Assembly (NCBI GenBank): GCA_002104945.1
Contig: MCFH01000004.1
Location: forward strand, 558,001 to 622,000
DNA: 64,000 nt
Origin: Piromyces finnis finn
Lineage: Eukaryota > Fungi > Neocallimastigomycota
Reading direction: 5' to 3'
Part shown: positions 3,630-64,000 of the stretch, in pieces
Layout of the letters: every line of letters begins with the position of its first letter
Numbering within the stretch: the first letter of the stretch is position 1
Position numbers and translations under genes: made by a program
Notes under the pieces: model-generated
What the model was told of the DNA's origin: nothing
Databases searched by the model: none
Seen by the model: only the letters and a program-made list of their open reading frames with translations

Positions 3630-5519
3630 CCTTTTCATTAACTTTTTCTTTTATTCCTACATATCTATTAAACCAGTATTGAGGAACAATAATATAATGA
3701 TCTTTTTCGTCTGATTTTGTTAAAACATTGTTTTGTGAACTTTGATCATGGAATTTTAAAAGTCTATATGGGTTATAATAATAATAGGATAATGATCGTA
3801 TTATCATGTTTAGTGACCATGGATGTACGCGTAGTAAGAATATCCCGCTATTAAGACCATTATAGTCTGAAGCTATAACCAAATGAATTTGATTCATTTC
3901 ATCAGGTGGTAAAAATGTTTCTAATTTAATATTTGGATTCGAAATTATTGTATCAGCATCAGACCAACTAATGATGCATTTGATAAATTCAAAAGGTAAT
4001 AGTATTAATATTATGTACTCTATTATAATAATAAAAATAACTTATTTGATATTATTTGATTTAAAACCTACAATATCCAGTCATATTTTTTTTCTTTTAA
4101 TCCTATTATGAGACTTTCCAAAATTGAATGAAGTTTCATATAATATATAGCTCTTTCAGTATCATATCTTTCTGAATATAATTGAAATTCATACCCATGA
4201 ATTTTTGAATATTGATATGCTTCGCTAATTGAATTTTCGACTTCTGTATTAGATTTAATTTGATCATGATATTTAACAAGTGCAATTCTAGGTTTTTTGA
4301 ATTCCTTTTCCCAAGATTTAGTTTTTTATAAAATTATGAAGGAAGAAGAATATAAAGAGATAATAAATGAAAAAAAAAAAACTTTAAAAACCCATATTTT
4401 TAATAAGTATTACATTAATCATTATTTATACGACAAATTATAAAAATATTAATAATAATAGAAAAAAAGGATAAATACTTTATTTTTTATACACTGATAT
4501 TTAATATGAAGATATTTATATATTACTCCACATCGGTTTTCGAAAAAATCATTATAAGGTTTTAATGTACATTCTTCTTTTCCTTCACATAAATCTTTTA
4601 CTACGCGTATTGGATCATATCCACAATCCACTTCAGTATAACGATAATCTTCTTTTATGTATCTATTATCTGAACCTGTCTCGCAGTTTTCAATATCATT
4701 TGCATAACGTCCATAAAAAGTATAATTTACAGATATAGTATATTGTGATGGACATGATAATACATATCCTTTTTGACTTTCATATGGTTGATTTTCTTTT
4801 AATTCGCATAGGTATTTTGAAGTTAAAGGAAGAACCTCCTCAAGAGAATCAAAATCATTTATATCATTTTTAAGAGTATTATTTACATAGATATTACTTT
4901 CATCTATATTATCTTCATCTGTGTTATTTTCATCCGTGTTATTTTCATCCGTGTTATTTTCATTTGTGTTATTTTCATTTGTGTTATTTTCATTTGTGTT
5001 ATTTTCATTTGTGTTATTTTTATCTGTGCTATTTTCATCTGTATTATTTTCATCTGTGTTATTTTTATCTAAATTATTTTCCTCTGTGTTATTTTCATTT
5101 AAATTATTTACATCTGTATTGTTTTTTAATTTATTGTTCATTAATAAGCGAAGATTAAGTTTTGTTCCGTCATCATTTTCTCTATCTAATGTAATCGGTC
5201 CATTTATTTCATTTATATCAAGTGGAACAAATCCTTTGACTGGAAATTGTTGTAATGTTATAGTATCATTTTGTTGACATTGTATTTTTTTTATGTTTTG
5301 ATATGCATCTTTTATTTTATCTGTAAGATTGTTTTTATTTATAGATATCATTAATGTTGTAAATCCTGTTGATAACATTATTAATATTATAAAAAGTAAC
5401 ATTAATATTACTTTTTTAATTTTTCGAGATGACAGGAACCTTTTCCGTTTTGTTGTTGTTGTATATAAGGGAATGGCATAATTATTTTGTGATTTTGGAA
5501 AAAGGGGAATATTGTTCAT
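3161..5519 (-). CDS. Type II membrane glycosyltransferase: TM anchor, Asn-rich stem, SUEL/Gal_Lectin domain and GT34 (MNN10/GMA12-like) domain; apparent frameshift or intron in a hexamer repeat
   Basis: Exons 5519-4479, 4304-~4072 and ~3970 onward. TM ILMLLFIILIMLSTGFTTLMISI. Cys-rich lectin LSCP..ISVNYTFYGRY..C..C..LCEGKEEC..YLHIKYQC. GT34 motifs YDWIFWSDADT, DYNGLNSGIFLLR, DQSS, PQYWFN, GGFLIHLAG. Ends DQNEIYTQF-TAA at 3163-3161. Confidence 0.85.
3376..3635. repeat. Hexamer microsatellite (GAAAAT/GAAAGT/GAAAAG)n on the minus strand, inside the GT34 gene
   Basis: (ttttca)n run on the plus strand; one 5-bp unit at 3536-3540. Confidence 0.95.
4914..5115 (-). repeat. 15-bp coding tandem repeat encoding NNT(D/N)E
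   Basis: gtgttattttcat(c/t)(c/t) units; translation NNTDE/NNTNE. Confidence 0.95.
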
Positions 5520-6479
5520 ATTGAAAAAGTCACTTTTTTTTTTTTTTTTTAAAATATATTAATAAACTTTTTTTTATATGAAAAGAATAAGATTATAGTA
5601 ATGAAAAAAAGAAAAAAAAGAAAAATAATTGTAATAATTTATTAAAGTTAAAAAAAGTAAATATTAATATATATTATATATTTAATTTAGCTTAATTTTC
5701 TTTCTTTTATTTTTGCAAATATAATAAGGATAAGGTTAAGACTTTTAAAAGAAAATCAACACACAAAACAAAGATAAAAACAGTATTTTTTAAAATGCTA
5801 TTATTAAATAGAACATTAACAACACTATTATTGTTAATAATATAATTTATAGATTAACACACTTTTCATCTTATTTTCCCTAGTTTCCTTAACTTTTACT
5901 TTATTGAAATGAAATTTTAAACATTTTTAAATAGATATTCAATACTTCAATACGGTACATTAATATTATTGAATATAAAAATTATAACAAATGAGTTTTT
6001 ATGGTATGGTAAAAATGACAATTAAATAATAAATTGGATGATTTTAAATGAATTCAAGGTTAAAAAAATAAAAGTATCTCTATAGGATATCATATCTCAA
6101 AAAAAAAAAGGTTGTTTAAAAATTTGACTTTTAATATAAATTTAAAATTTTAATCCATAAAAAATTTAATTTATATTTAATTATAAAAAAATTTAATTAT
6201 TTTATATTTTTTATATTTTATTTTATTTAAATATTTTATATAGGTGTAAATCGAAAAAAAAAAAAAAAGTTTCAAACTATCGTATAAATATATATAAATA
6301 TATGTATATTTTGAATGTTATACATTTTAAATAATATTATTATTGTAAATATTATTATATAAAAGAAATAACTTTATATACAGATATTTTGTTATTACCT
6401 CATTCAAATAAACAAAAGAAAATTAATTATTTCTCACATTATAAATGATAATTATTTTAATTTAAAATTACGAAAAACT

Positions 6480-43908: not shown

Positions 43909-44832
43909 CTTTATAAATTATATCAAGAGAGAGAAAAATCAAATAATTGTAATTTTGATATTATCATATCTTTTCTTTTTTACATTTTCAACCCAATCAT
44001 GTAATTACATTATAATTTCTGCCAATCTTATACATTGGTGGTACATTGGAAATTGTTATACGTATACATTTTTGGAAAAAGGATAAATTTTATTACTAAA
44101 TTTTAAAAATTAAAACTTTAATTCAGCAATTGCGGACTGTATATGGTGTGTGTGCGTAGAATGAAAGAAATAAATAGGTAGTGCAAATGAGTGTTGGTGA
44201 AAAGTTTAAATTTAATATATTTTCAATGTTAATAAATAATAAACAGAAATAAATAAGTAAATAAATAAATCTATTGTTTATTAATTAATTTGCTGGTGGT
44301 GGTGTATTGTAGCCATTATAAAATATTTATAATAAATATTTTAATAATAATAATAATTATTATTATTATTTATTTATTTATTTATTTATTTATTATCAAT
44401 TATATCTTATTATATTTTATTTTTATTTATATATATATATATATTTTTTTTTTTTGGTGGTTTGAAATTGTTTACTTTTTTTTTTTCTTGTAAAATCATT
44501 TTAAATATGTTATTATTGCATAATTATACTAAATTTTGAATTTTATCAAATCATATCTTATTTATGAATACTTTATTCTTTTTTTTTCCCTTTTATGTTA
44601 TATAATATTTTTTTTTTTTGTAAATAAATTACTTTATTTTTAATAGATATACCTTTTTGATAAAACTTTAATTCTGATAATTTAATTTTAATTAAAATGT
44701 TCTAAATAATTATTTTATAATTGTTAAAAATAAAAATCTTTTATTATTATTATTATTATTAGACATTTTTTTTAAACAAAATAAAAATATGGATATATGA
44801 AATTCAAATAATAAAAAATATATAATATATCA

Positions 44833-61210: not shown

Positions 61211-62139
61211 ACATAGATAAAATTAAAGCAATTAAAAAATAGTTATATTTTCTTTACATAAAAATACTAATAAATTTTAACTCTATTTCTTTGAACTTTT
61301 TGTCTACTTAATATATTATTATTTAAACAATAATAGTCATAATAACAATAATAATAATAATATAATATTTTATTAAATCATGATGCTTTATTTTTAATTA
61401 TTATTATAATTAAAAGATTGTATTTAAAAAAAAAAAAAAAAAAAAATTAGAAATACAGATAATATTAAAAAATATATAAATTTATTATTAGTTCTTCATC
61501 ATAATATTTATAAAATATATATTTTAAAAATAAAAATAAAAAAAAAAAAGTATAAGCCTATAACTTTTTTGTAAAATAAAAAAAAAAAAAAAAAAAATAT
61601 GCTAATTAATTAATATTGCTTTTTTTTTTTTAACCCATTTATTTAATATTCTTGAAAAAAAAAAAAAAAAGTTGTTAATGGTATAATACTATTTTCATTT
61701 TATTGTTAAATATAATAAAAATATATATTTAAATCATGGATATTGACCATATTTGATCTATAGATAATTTTTTTTTCCCTCTTAATTAGTAATGAAAATT
61801 TTATATTTTTTATTACTTATCACCACTATTTCTTATAAAAAAAAAAAAAAAAAAAAAGTCTTGATATATTATTAACTACCTCGAACATATCATTTGTTTT
61901 TTTTTTGTTTTTGTTTTTTTTTTTTTTTAGACTAAGAAGAGAATACACTTCTTCTTGTATTTATTTTGTGAAATTACATTATATTAGATGATAATACATA
62001 TTGATATAAATGAATAACAAATAAAAATAATAAAATATATTATATATAAATATAAAAGTTCAATAAATTCTGCAATTCGTATTGTGTGGAATGGTTCCCT
62101 ACCTAATAAATTAAATGAAATAAAAAAAAAAAAAAAGTA

Positions 62140-62780
62140 ACCTCAGGTAGGATAGTGTGATGTCCATTAAAATCTCCCTTGAACCTCCTAATGTTTTCGT
62201 TTGAAGAAATACAAACATTGAATCCTGTGTGTATGAAACATTAGGAATGTTCCTTCATCATATCAGTAAGATGTCGGTGCTCTTGATGACGTTAGGGTGT
62301 CATACGAAACCTATCAAAAAGTAGCTTCATTGAACTACTTACGATAAAGATTGTTTTAGTAAGAAAAGTCGCAAGACCCTCTACCTATGAAGCATGAGAC
62401 CCCAATGAACTTGTAAAGCGGTTCATTCAAATGCCTTTGTTCCGCCTTATTAATTTGTAGCTCATCCTAAAATTCCACCAAGAAGGAACATAAAACTATA
62501 GTTATAAATTGTTTTTTTCTTTACTTCCATTTCAGGGAGTAAGTAATGAATTGATGATTGTCTTTCTTGTGAAAAAGGGTAAAAAGATCGTCAAGAATGC
62601 AAAGTTCTGTATTTAGAAAATGTGCAGGACATTCTAAAATCCAATGATAAAAAAGATTGTTTATCCTATCCGCAACATGGACAGATACGAAGGTAGTCAG
62701 GTGTAACTCTATTACTGACAATAGCAGTTCTGATGAAAATAATTCCATCATCTTTTCATAACAAGGAAAAAGAATAAATT
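62140..62780 (-). mobile_element. Decayed non-LTR retrotransposon ORF2 C-terminus (CCHC zinc knuckle)
   Basis: With one stop and a 1-nt indel it reads RICPCCG*DKQSFYHWILECP (C-x2-C-x7-H-x4-C), followed by FLLGG. Locally GC-richer; multiple stops. Confidence 0.72.
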
Positions 62781-63317
62781 TCTTAAAAACAATAATTTAA
62801 AATAAAAAAACCAAAAGAAAATTTTAACAAGTTATTGAACTTTTATTACAGGGTCAATCGAATTCTATAAAGATTTAGAGTAACAACACCATATTATTCC
62901 ATACATGCCTTTACATTTTTATTTTAACAATAACTAATATTTTAAACATCATTATTAAATGCTTTACTTACATCCTTAACTTATATATTATTAAATATTA
63001 TAATATTTATAAAATTCCCAATTTTACATTTATCATCAACTATATTAAAAATAATTTTCAATATTTTTAAATGACATAAAATCAAACTTTTACATTTTAA
63101 CACACTCTAAAACTTCACAATTCAATATTTTTTTAATTTTCTTTTATTTATTTATAAAAACTTCTTACATTTTATTTTTCATTATACATATATTATATTT
63201 AATATTAAAATAAAACCAGCCATATTTACCTATAAAATATTAAATAATATTTTAATTAGCTATTAAAACTCATTTCAAAATATATATTTATAAAATGTTT
63301 TTTAAATATTATTATTA

Positions 63318-63393
63318 ATTTTCAGAATGGAAATTCATCTCATACTGTAATTCGAAATGAGCTGGGTTTAATAGCATAGTGTTTCATCATTTA
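63318..63393 (-). ncRNA. snR71: Box C/D snoRNA, snR71/U29-like (guide for 25S Am2946, yeast numbering)
   Basis: Box C ATGATGA 63390-63384; D' TCGA 63355-63352; C' ATGAGA; box D CTGA 63325-63322. A 13-nt antisense to 25S UGAGCUGGGUUUA; the 5th nt upstream of D' pairs with A2946. Flanked by a 20-bp perfect inverted repeat. Confidence 0.85.
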
Positions 63394-63586
63394 AATTAAT
63401 AATAATATTTAATAAACATTTGGTATTTTGTTCACTAAATTTACCTTTTATTTATTATTACAGTTACTATATTTTAATTTTGGTTAATATCTACATTCCA
63501 CCAAAGTTAATCTAAATTATAAAAATACATCACTTTTAGTAAACCCATTAAGTTTTATAATATATAATATATTAATAAAATTTAAT

Positions 63587-63672
63587 CATTTCAGAATGAA
63601 CATATACGATCTCATTAAAACCTTTGTTTTCGAAGAGCTGGGTTTAGAAAAAGCATGTATTTCATCATTTAA
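63587..63672 (-). ncRNA. snR69: Box C/D snoRNA, snR69-like (guide for 25S Cm2948)
   Basis: Box C 63668-63662; D' TCGA 63633-63630; C' ATGAGA; box D 63594-63591. A 14-nt antisense to GAGCUGGGUUUAGA; the 5th nt upstream of D' pairs with C2948. Flanked by a 15-bp perfect inverted repeat. Confidence 0.85.
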
Positions 63673-63741
63673 TGATTAAATTTTAATTTCAAAAAATATT
63701 GATAATTACCTTTCTTCCATTTTTATGGATAATTTTAATTT

Positions 63742-63877
63742 TTATGTCAAATTCACAGTAAATATATAAATAATTATAGAATAATTTATATTATTACTGT
63801 AAATTTATTTGCTTTCGTCTAAATAAAAATTGAAACATCACATGGAAATTGAAATGTCACAGAGTGTATTAGACATA
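63742..63877 (-). ncRNA. Box H/ACA snoRNA, snR80-like (guide for 18S Psi759)
   Basis: Hairpin 1 lower stem GTCTAA/TTAGAC; H box AAAGCA 63815-63810; hairpin 2 AAATTTACAGTAA/TTACTGTGAATTT; ACA at 63747-63745 plus 3 nt. Pocket strands CACTCT and TTTTT fit 18S AAAAA-UU-AGAGUG, 14 nt from the H box. Confidence 0.75.
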
Positions 63878-63983
63878 ATACAAATTTTTGTTTGTTTCTA
63901 AATAAAATAATACTTTATAAAATAATAATATAAAATTAATATCCATATTTATATTTTATAATATTATTAAACGGTTATCTTTT

Positions 63984-64000
63984 ATTGTCAGATACCGTCG
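63984..64000 (-). ncRNA. 3' end of a box C/D snoRNA, snR79-like (18S Cm1007), truncated by the window edge
   Basis: Minus strand CGACGGTAT-CTGA is antisense to 18S UCAGAUACCGUCG; the 5th nt upstream of box D pairs with C1007. Box C lies outside the window. Confidence 0.65.

Follow-up and report, generated by a model that had tools for sequence, protein, structure and literature searches.

Probably, the far end of the window (the 64,000-nucleotide [nt] stretch of Piromyces finnis DNA analysed here) carries a compact, unannotated cluster of small nucleolar RNA (snoRNA) genes on the minus strand of 63230-64000, predicted from its sequence and comprising three complete genes and the tail of a fourth. 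Read 5' to 3', these are a box C/D gene resembling snR79, most of which lies past the window end, a box H/ACA gene, and two further box C/D genes resembling snR69 and snR71. An earlier note on this DNA had placed four guide RNAs here, with intact boxes and terminal stems, in a region without open reading frames (ORFs). Place and strand hold for the three complete RNAs, as do boxes and stems for the snR69-like, snR71-like and H/ACA genes, whereas the fourth RNA is cut by the window end and shows only its D box and half a stem. The region is indeed ORF-less, with no ORF above 40 amino acids in the snoRNA-bearing minus-strand interval (62800-64000).

Conservation of the cluster was evaluated in a related fungus. 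A search for homologues of an exon of the neighbouring plus-strand gene (57.8-61.2 kb), which encodes a Gti1/Pac2 (WOPR) protein, led through the orthologue P0001 to a metagenome contig, L002, that carries the same four RNAs in the same relative strand and order, downstream of the WOPR gene and between it and an NDR-family kinase gene. The synteny comparison suggested in the earlier note therefore finds gene order, boxes and guides conserved in one syntenic sister locus. Window and L002 share 95-100% of positions in the snoRNAs, against 49-69% in the spacers, and the coding exon of the neighbouring gene shows only 56% protein identity. The snR69-like unit is identical at all 104 of 104 positions, the visible snR79-like tail at 25 of 26 and hairpin 1 of the H/ACA gene at 57 of 60 (95%). 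By this comparison, the cluster is shown to be under purifying selection relative to the sister species. A homologue search with an NDR-kinase exon returned only distant fungi, without synteny, and one with P0002 only transcript-length contigs.

Table 1. Predicted snoRNA genes and splice-like signals of the cluster, in 5' to 3' order (window coordinates; a slash marks the putative splice junction).
Feature	Position	Strand	Details
snR79-like box C/D gene, 3' end	63975-64000	minus	9-nt guide 64000-63992; D box CUGA 63991-63988; 3' stem half
Candidate box H/ACA snoRNA, ~133 nt	~63874-63742	minus	Predicted from fold, pocket and conservation in L002
H/ACA hairpin 1	63874-63817	minus	Pocket strands 63868-63862 (5') and 63830-63823 (3')
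H/ACA H box, hairpin 2 and ACA	63815-63810; 63806-63749; 63747-63745	minus	H box AAAGCA; hairpin 2 of 58 nt
5' splice-site-like AAAG/GUAAUU	63704-63709	minus	24 nt upstream of snR69-like external stem
snR69-like box C/D snoRNA	63576-63685; core 63668-63591	minus	Passes full C/D scan
snR69-like boxes	63668-63662; 63633-63630; 63615-63610; 63594-63591	minus	C AUGAUGA; D' UCGA; C'; D CUGA
Branch-point-like UACUAA and AG	63541-63536; 63513-63512	minus	Putative splice use
Putative 67-nt non-coding exon	63445-63511	minus	Between AG 63512 and GU 63444
5' splice-site-like AAAG/GUAAAU	63439-63444	minus	32 nt upstream of snR71-like external stem
snR71/SNORD29-like box C/D snoRNA	63302-63412; core 63390-63322	minus	Passes full C/D scan
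snR71-like boxes	63390-63384; 63355-63352; 63325-63322	minus	C; D' UCGA; D
Branch-point-like GCUAAU and AG/GU	63260-63255; 63231-63228	minus	72 nt downstream of snR71-like stem; putative function

Box C/D guides follow the +5 rule, and box H/ACA guides the 14-16-nt rule. To apply them, we needed a ribosomal RNA (rRNA) reference. A scan of a prokaryotic genome collection for 18S motifs returned many contaminating eukaryotic ribosomal DNA (rDNA) contigs, of which one (L017, NZ_BMQD01000062.1) was used as the reference, with an 1800-nt 18S and a 3396-nt 25S bearing Saccharomyces cerevisiae termini. Its numbering was checked at U759, U766, C1007, U776, A2946 and C2948, which all carry the expected letters, and the sequences around the target sites vary little or not at all across the eukaryotic rDNAs retrieved. 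Anaerobic-fungal rDNA primer sequences matched none of 120 rDNA-bearing loci. For the three C/D genes, antisense stretches of at least 10 nt abut the D or D' box and place the +5 position at a modifiable nucleotide, with duplexes of 14, 15 and 12 bp for the snR69-like, snR71-like and snR79-like genes, respectively. In yeast, snR79 directs 18S Cm1007, snR80 18S Psi759, snR69 25S Cm2948 and snR71 25S Am2946 (PMC5699541). The coincidence of all four predicted sites with known yeast modifications, already claimed from the sequence, was reproduced on real yeast rDNA and matches the table in that work.

Both 25S-directed genes combine an RUGAUGA C box, a CUGA D box and a terminal stem. In the snR69-like gene, the D' guide (63648-63635) forms 14 perfect pairs with 25S 2945-2958 and puts C2948 at +5 upstream of UCGA; the 17 nt of guide and D' box are identical to the Rfam snR69 consensus, and the gene matches snosnR69 (RF00475) over its full length (63589-63672) with 36.9 bits and E = 5e-4, below the gathering score of 50. 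The L002 copy has the same score (36.9 bits). In the snR71-like gene, the D' guide forms 15 bp, two of them G-U, with 25S 2943-2957 and has A2946 at +5. Positions 63317-63395 match SNORD29 (RF00070) with 27.2 bits and E = 9e-3, where gathering requires 48, and snoR31 with a sub-threshold 28.6 bits; the best match of the L002 counterpart within the clan is snR69, at 29.5 bits. The two genes are tandem paralogues. They share a 12-nt guide core, and because their D' boxes are offset by 2 nt, the methylated site is moved by 2 nt.

The same relationship is present in known families. Yeast snR69 (RF00475) and snR71/human SNORD29 carry the same 25S antisense core, UAAACCCAGCUC, beside a degenerate D' box and in the same C2948/A2946 register, and Rfam clan CL00051 already joins snR69 with snR71/SNORD29, so that their paralogy is known. 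In Neurospora crassa, however, both sites are reportedly served by one snoRNA, Nc CD27 (PMC2780460), whereas two adjacent tandem paralogues are found here. The gut-fungal genes also differ from the snR69/SNORD29 families in a much shorter spacer between C box and guide and in their external stems of 15-20 bp. Terminal stems of C/D snoRNAs usually have 4-8 bp. The external stem of the snR69-like gene has 15 bp spanning 63685-63576, with a 7-bp inner stem that ends at 63584, and that of the snR71-like gene has 20 bp spanning 63412-63302; the L002 stems lie at 5967-5856 and 5678-5566. These stems (15-16 and 20 bp) are perfectly paired, far longer than usual and kept in both species, the snR71-like one with one compensatory change from U-A to C-G, and they may be a precursor-processing feature. 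A scan of metagenome contigs with a C-box-plus-guide pattern returned six loci, with no anaerobic fungus and no cluster among them, and a scan of viral contigs found nothing. One of the six, L131 (8478-8600, plus strand; soil metagenome, 47% G+C), contains a solitary C/D snoRNA that shares the 25S guide, in the register for A2946, and has no neighbouring paralogue; it is probably an snR71-type gene of another fungus; the other pattern loci were rejected as chance matches in GC-rich DNA.

The snR79-like gene is seen in the window as CGACGGUAU followed by CUGA (64000-63988) and half a stem. Its nine visible guide nucleotides face 18S 1003-1011, with C1007 at +5. The complete gene is visible only in L002 (6356-6273; C box at 6350, D box ending at 6279), where C and D' boxes are present, the D guide pairs over 12 bp with 18S 1003-1014 (C1007 at +5) and the stem has 5 bp. 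It scores 22.6 bits against Rfam snR79 (RF01184), short of the gathering score of 55. This D-box guide, CUACGACGGUAU, has the same target as yeast snR79 (RF01184), and the family consensus guide is nearly the same. Unlike yeast snR79, the gene in L002 has a second antisense element (6337-6312, minus strand), which lies upstream of a canonical D' CUGA and resembles the snR77 guide region, with one mismatch. The expectation that the cluster continues beyond 64000 is borne out in L002 for the rest of the snR79-like gene and a probable first exon, but not for additional snoRNAs: a C/D scan and Rfam found no further snoRNA upstream of the snR79-like gene in L002. Apart from GUAAGU and a TATA-like run, that side is simply AT-rich for about 1 kb, up to the stop codon of the NDR-family kinase gene.

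The remaining gene shows the hairpin-hinge-hairpin-tail arrangement of box H/ACA snoRNAs, with its ACA 1 nt past hairpin 2. In hairpin 1, an internal loop of 7 + 8 nt separates a lower stem of 6 bp from the upper stem, and the fold is far stabler than those of shuffled sequences (z = -4.7). In the pocket, ACACUC can pair with 18S 761-766 and AUUUUU with 753-758, so that U759-A760 would stay unpaired where the upper stem begins; these 6 + 6 bp surround U759, and the distance from pocket to H box is 15 nt, within the 14-16-nt rule. The gene is thus a predicted guide for 18S Psi759 (yeast numbering). A consensus fold was also obtained with L002, in which hairpin 2 substitutions fall in the loop or preserve pairing (3/3 stem changes) and the H box changes from AAAGCA to AAAGUA, which still conforms to ANANNA. 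In Rfam, hairpin 1 matches the nematode H/ACA family ceN41 weakly (23.9 bits), with similar letters on the pocket strands; a literature search on ceN41 targets found nothing relevant. Yeast snR80 (fungal family HACA_37) has the same 18S Psi759 target, and the HACA_37/snR80 family is reported to be old in fungi (PMC5824354). Yeast snR80 is, however, a double guide that also directs 25S Psi776 (PMC5699541), whereas the gene described here has no second guide for that site: hairpin 2 has no pocket and, by inspection, no complementarity to the 25S 776 context. Because this second guide and a match to an snR80 model are both missing, orthology to snR80 is unproven.

We compared these features with shuffled versions of the window. 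Perfect antisense matches of at least 12 nt to yeast rRNA were not enriched (48 in the window against a mean of 41.8 in block-shuffled windows), nor were bipartite 6+6 matches with an H or ACA box after them, of which the window has 217 and the shuffled sequence 179. Simple rRNA complementarity statistics were therefore rejected as evidence, because they are at chance level in this AT-rich DNA. A full C/D scan recovered from the 64 kb exactly the snR69-like and snR71-like genes, against 0.02 matches per shuffled window; its criteria were C and D boxes separated by 45-140 nt, a terminal stem at least 5 bp long and 10 antisense nucleotides that include the +5 position. A full H/ACA scan, in which stems had to flank the pocket, the 14-16-nt rule had to hold and a stable second hairpin had to close with ACA, gave one match, the candidate, against none in 200 shuffles. 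The sole other stem-qualified H/ACA pocket match (44742-44819, minus strand; 18S U216 context) has no stable second hairpin and is probably due to chance.

The C/D genes are accompanied by splice-like motifs that stand as conserved islands in diverged spacers and resemble the splice sites of coding genes in the same window. AAAG/GUAA is kept in L002 at the same 24-nt distance from the snR69-like stem, and upstream of the snR71-like stem the L002 counterpart reads ACAG/GUAAAU, at 26 nt. Downstream of the snR69-like gene, UACUAA and AG lie 35 and 64 nt from the end of the external stem at 63576 (43 and 72 nt from the inner stem end at 63584), and a comparable branch-point-like motif with an AG 73 nt downstream is present in L002. 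Downstream of the snR71-like gene, a block running from UGAAAUGAGU through GCUAAUUAAA to AG/GUAA is conserved in L002. The snR79-like gene of L002 has GUAAGU 37 nt upstream and AG 85 nt downstream. The intervals between splice-like motifs are poorly conserved and C-poor on the transcribed strand; the putative exon at 63445-63511 is about 49% identical to L002, as expected of non-coding snoRNA host exons. Of the features expected of a UHG-like host, splice-like motifs at conserved distances were seen for the three C/D genes but not for the H/ACA gene, and no ORF is above 40 amino acids. In both species the H/ACA gene starts 24 nt past the AG downstream of the snR79-like gene, and it ends 33-41 nt before the next GUAA. 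Three sites have AG/GU after a polypyrimidine and branch-point-like context, the motif of recursive splice sites (63231-63228 in the window; 5500-5497 and 5784-5781 in L002); other AG/GUAA sites look like ordinary 5' splice sites with an exon-final AG.

Taken together, these signals lead us to favor, by a modest degree, a single UHG-like host gene with intronic C/D snoRNAs. A single non-coding RNA polymerase II host transcript, of the UHG/GAS5 type, would then give rise to all four RNAs. The C/D snoRNAs would each lie in a short intron of their own, between a 5' splice-like site 24-37 nt upstream and an AG 64-85 nt downstream, with the 15-20-bp external stems aiding precursor folding, and the H/ACA snoRNA would occupy an exon-like interval of ~190 nt between two introns. 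In complex with fibrillarin, Nop56, Nop58 and Snu13, the C/D RNAs would direct 2'-O-methylation of the nucleotide opposite the fifth position upstream of the D or D' box, at 18S C1007, 25S C2948 and 25S A2946. The H/ACA RNA would join the Cbf5 pseudouridine synthase complex, its 5' pocket targeting 18S U759 and its 3' hairpin serving a structural role only. A more elaborate proposal, which we regard as speculative and rather unlikely in its full form, is a non-coding host conserved in gut fungi that carries the H/ACA gene in an exon-like interval and the C/D genes in flanking introns, where release of the H/ACA RNA competes with, or depends on, alternative or recursive splicing at AG/GU.

Several points weigh against this interpretation. 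Targets were measured on yeast rRNA and conserved eukaryotic rDNA contexts, which stand in for the rRNA of the host, and conservation rests on one sister species, with thin covariation support. Neither the D' guide of the snR79-like gene (in L002) nor the D guides of the two 25S-directed snoRNAs have a convincing target in yeast rRNA (18S or 25S for the former). Rfam run at gathering thresholds found no match in the entire 64-kb window, and with E-value reporting it gave several sub-threshold matches within the cluster; every gene is below its gathering score, and no match up to E = 10 is named snR80. Since gathering scores are not reached, family names are given as "-like", by target and architecture only, and the snR79, snR80, snR69 and snR71 labels of the earlier note are kept in that restricted sense. 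With regard to expression, splice signals carry little information in DNA of ~80% A+T, and a conserved 5' splice site belonging to the H/ACA gene itself is missing. For that reason this gene would have to be exon-like, share an intron with the snR79-like gene or use its own promoter, and a single-host model needs it to be exon-embedded or co-intronic.

The most serious alternative, though clearly less probable than a spliced host, is that the snoRNAs are real but not intronic, being cut from a polycistron by an endonuclease of the ribonuclease III type, as in plants or yeast, or transcribed independently of one another. The H/ACA gene is the most plausible candidate for a promoter of its own: it lacks that splice site and has TATA-like runs ~45 nt upstream in both species, although TATA-like strings are ubiquitous in this DNA. 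The perfectly paired external stems of 15-20 bp could also be sites of double-strand-specific cleavage, and there is precedent in yeast snoRNA clusters, which are processed without splicing, and in N. crassa, in which most H/ACA genes are independent (PMC2780460). This model does not readily account for the AAAG/GUAA found 24-32 nt upstream of both 25S-directed genes in both species, for the GUAAGU 37 nt upstream of the L002 snR79-like gene, or for the branch-point-like motifs and AG 64-85 nt downstream, all within spacers that are otherwise only 49-69% identical.

It is improbable that the host is a long 3' untranslated region (UTR), or read-through, of the upstream same-strand NDR-family kinase gene and not a dedicated non-coding gene. 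In L002, only ~1.1 kb separates the kinase stop codon from the snR79-like gene that follows it on the same strand, and H/ACA snoRNAs occur in the 3' UTRs of protein genes in N. crassa (PMC2780460). However, the intervening DNA (about 1 kb) is very AT-rich and contains long homopolymer runs, a TATA-like run and GUAAGU are found just upstream of the snR79-like gene, and the kinase gene is seen at that position in L002 alone.

We give slightly less credit still to the idea that the H/ACA candidate is not a guide RNA and that its AT-rich hairpin pair owes its conservation to something else, such as host-exon structure, the match to U759 being fortuitous. Such 6+6 matches with an ANANNA box are common by chance, as the counts above indicate, and another U759 match occurs on the plus strand; the 3' hairpin is pocketless, snR80 models are not matched and no double compensatory change was seen. 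Nevertheless, the full architecture never arose in the 200 shuffles, and L002 keeps the pocket strands, H box and ACA unchanged or within consensus, whereas loops and hinge change. Moreover, the candidate lies inside a snoRNA cluster, and its target is among the ~3% of yeast rRNA uridines that are pseudouridylated (PMC5699541). A chance origin of all the motifs, or their decay into snoRNA pseudogenes, is highly improbable, as it has nothing in its favor beyond the unmet Rfam gathering scores and is contradicted by the full-architecture controls and by near-perfect snoRNA conservation next to diverged spacers.

The favored organization, a single spliced host, has counterparts in other systems. 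As in N. crassa and animal UHG/GAS5 hosts, several same-strand snoRNAs are associated, one each, with short introns, here putative, among poorly conserved, ORF-free exon-like intervals. N. crassa UHG-like hosts carry one C/D snoRNA per intron, and one exon-encoded snoRNA is known in such a cluster (PMC2780460). While clusters in N. crassa and yeast contain C/D snoRNAs only, the one described here mixes C/D and H/ACA genes (PMC2780460). In this respect it resembles plant and trypanosomatid clusters, in which both classes are likewise tightly packed on the same strand (PMC2780460). Those polycistrons are released by endonucleolytic cleavage, whereas the C/D genes studied here are flanked by splice-like signals.

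The four RNAs are ordinary members of known snoRNA families in a little-studied phylum, and the locus does not change what is known of snoRNA mechanism. A full-text literature search combining snoRNA with Neocallimastigomycota returned nothing substantive, and a survey of fungal snoRNAomes does not mention the phylum (PMC5824354). The claim that this combination has no description in anaerobic gut fungi is consistent with that search, which found no paper on Neocallimastigomycota snoRNAs. The locus supplies four concrete conserved genes for annotation where curated Rfam thresholds see nothing in 64 kb, and the cluster offers seeds from which covariance models for extremely AT-rich genomes could be built. 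By its prediction, gut fungi retain four widely conserved rRNA modifications, two of them beside the peptidyl-transferase center, and its tandem snR69/snR71 pair is a clean example of retargeting through a 2-nt shift of the D' box. The mixing of classes around an exon-like H/ACA gene is a modest organizational curiosity; if true, an exon-like H/ACA gene between C/D introns would be a mixed organization not reported for fungal clusters.

Some additional features were observed around the cluster. Just 3' of the last snoRNA, the minus strand of 62900-63200 is nearly C-free on the transcribed strand, with a plus-strand GC skew of -0.8 to -0.93. The equivalent position in L002 (~5250-5450, minus strand) is G/U-rich and C-poor by eye, with nothing alignable. 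This C-poor stretch may be the compositional signature of a host terminal exon. A weak Rfam match to SNORD45 at 62858-62924 on the minus strand (22.7 bits, E = 0.17), sharing GGCAUGUAU, has no proper C/D boxes and is probably due to chance. Farther away, 62120-62800 forms an ORF-poor block of 30-36% G+C within surroundings of 10-20% G+C, its minus strand ending in 15 U. It contains a C box AUGAUGA near 62262, paired with a D box CUGA at 62146-62143 that is abutted by 11 nt antisense to 18S 326-336; a terminal stem is missing, and yeast has no known modification there. As a further snoRNA or host exon, this block was rejected: Rfam and Pfam gave no match, it is not repeated in the window, and the syntenic interval of L002 lacks a counterpart. 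Finally, over a hundred contigs filed as bacterial or archaeal (many of L011-L130) carry eukaryotic 18S motifs, and several of ~9.1-9.3 kb are complete S. cerevisiae-type rDNA repeats, pointing to contamination of those assemblies.

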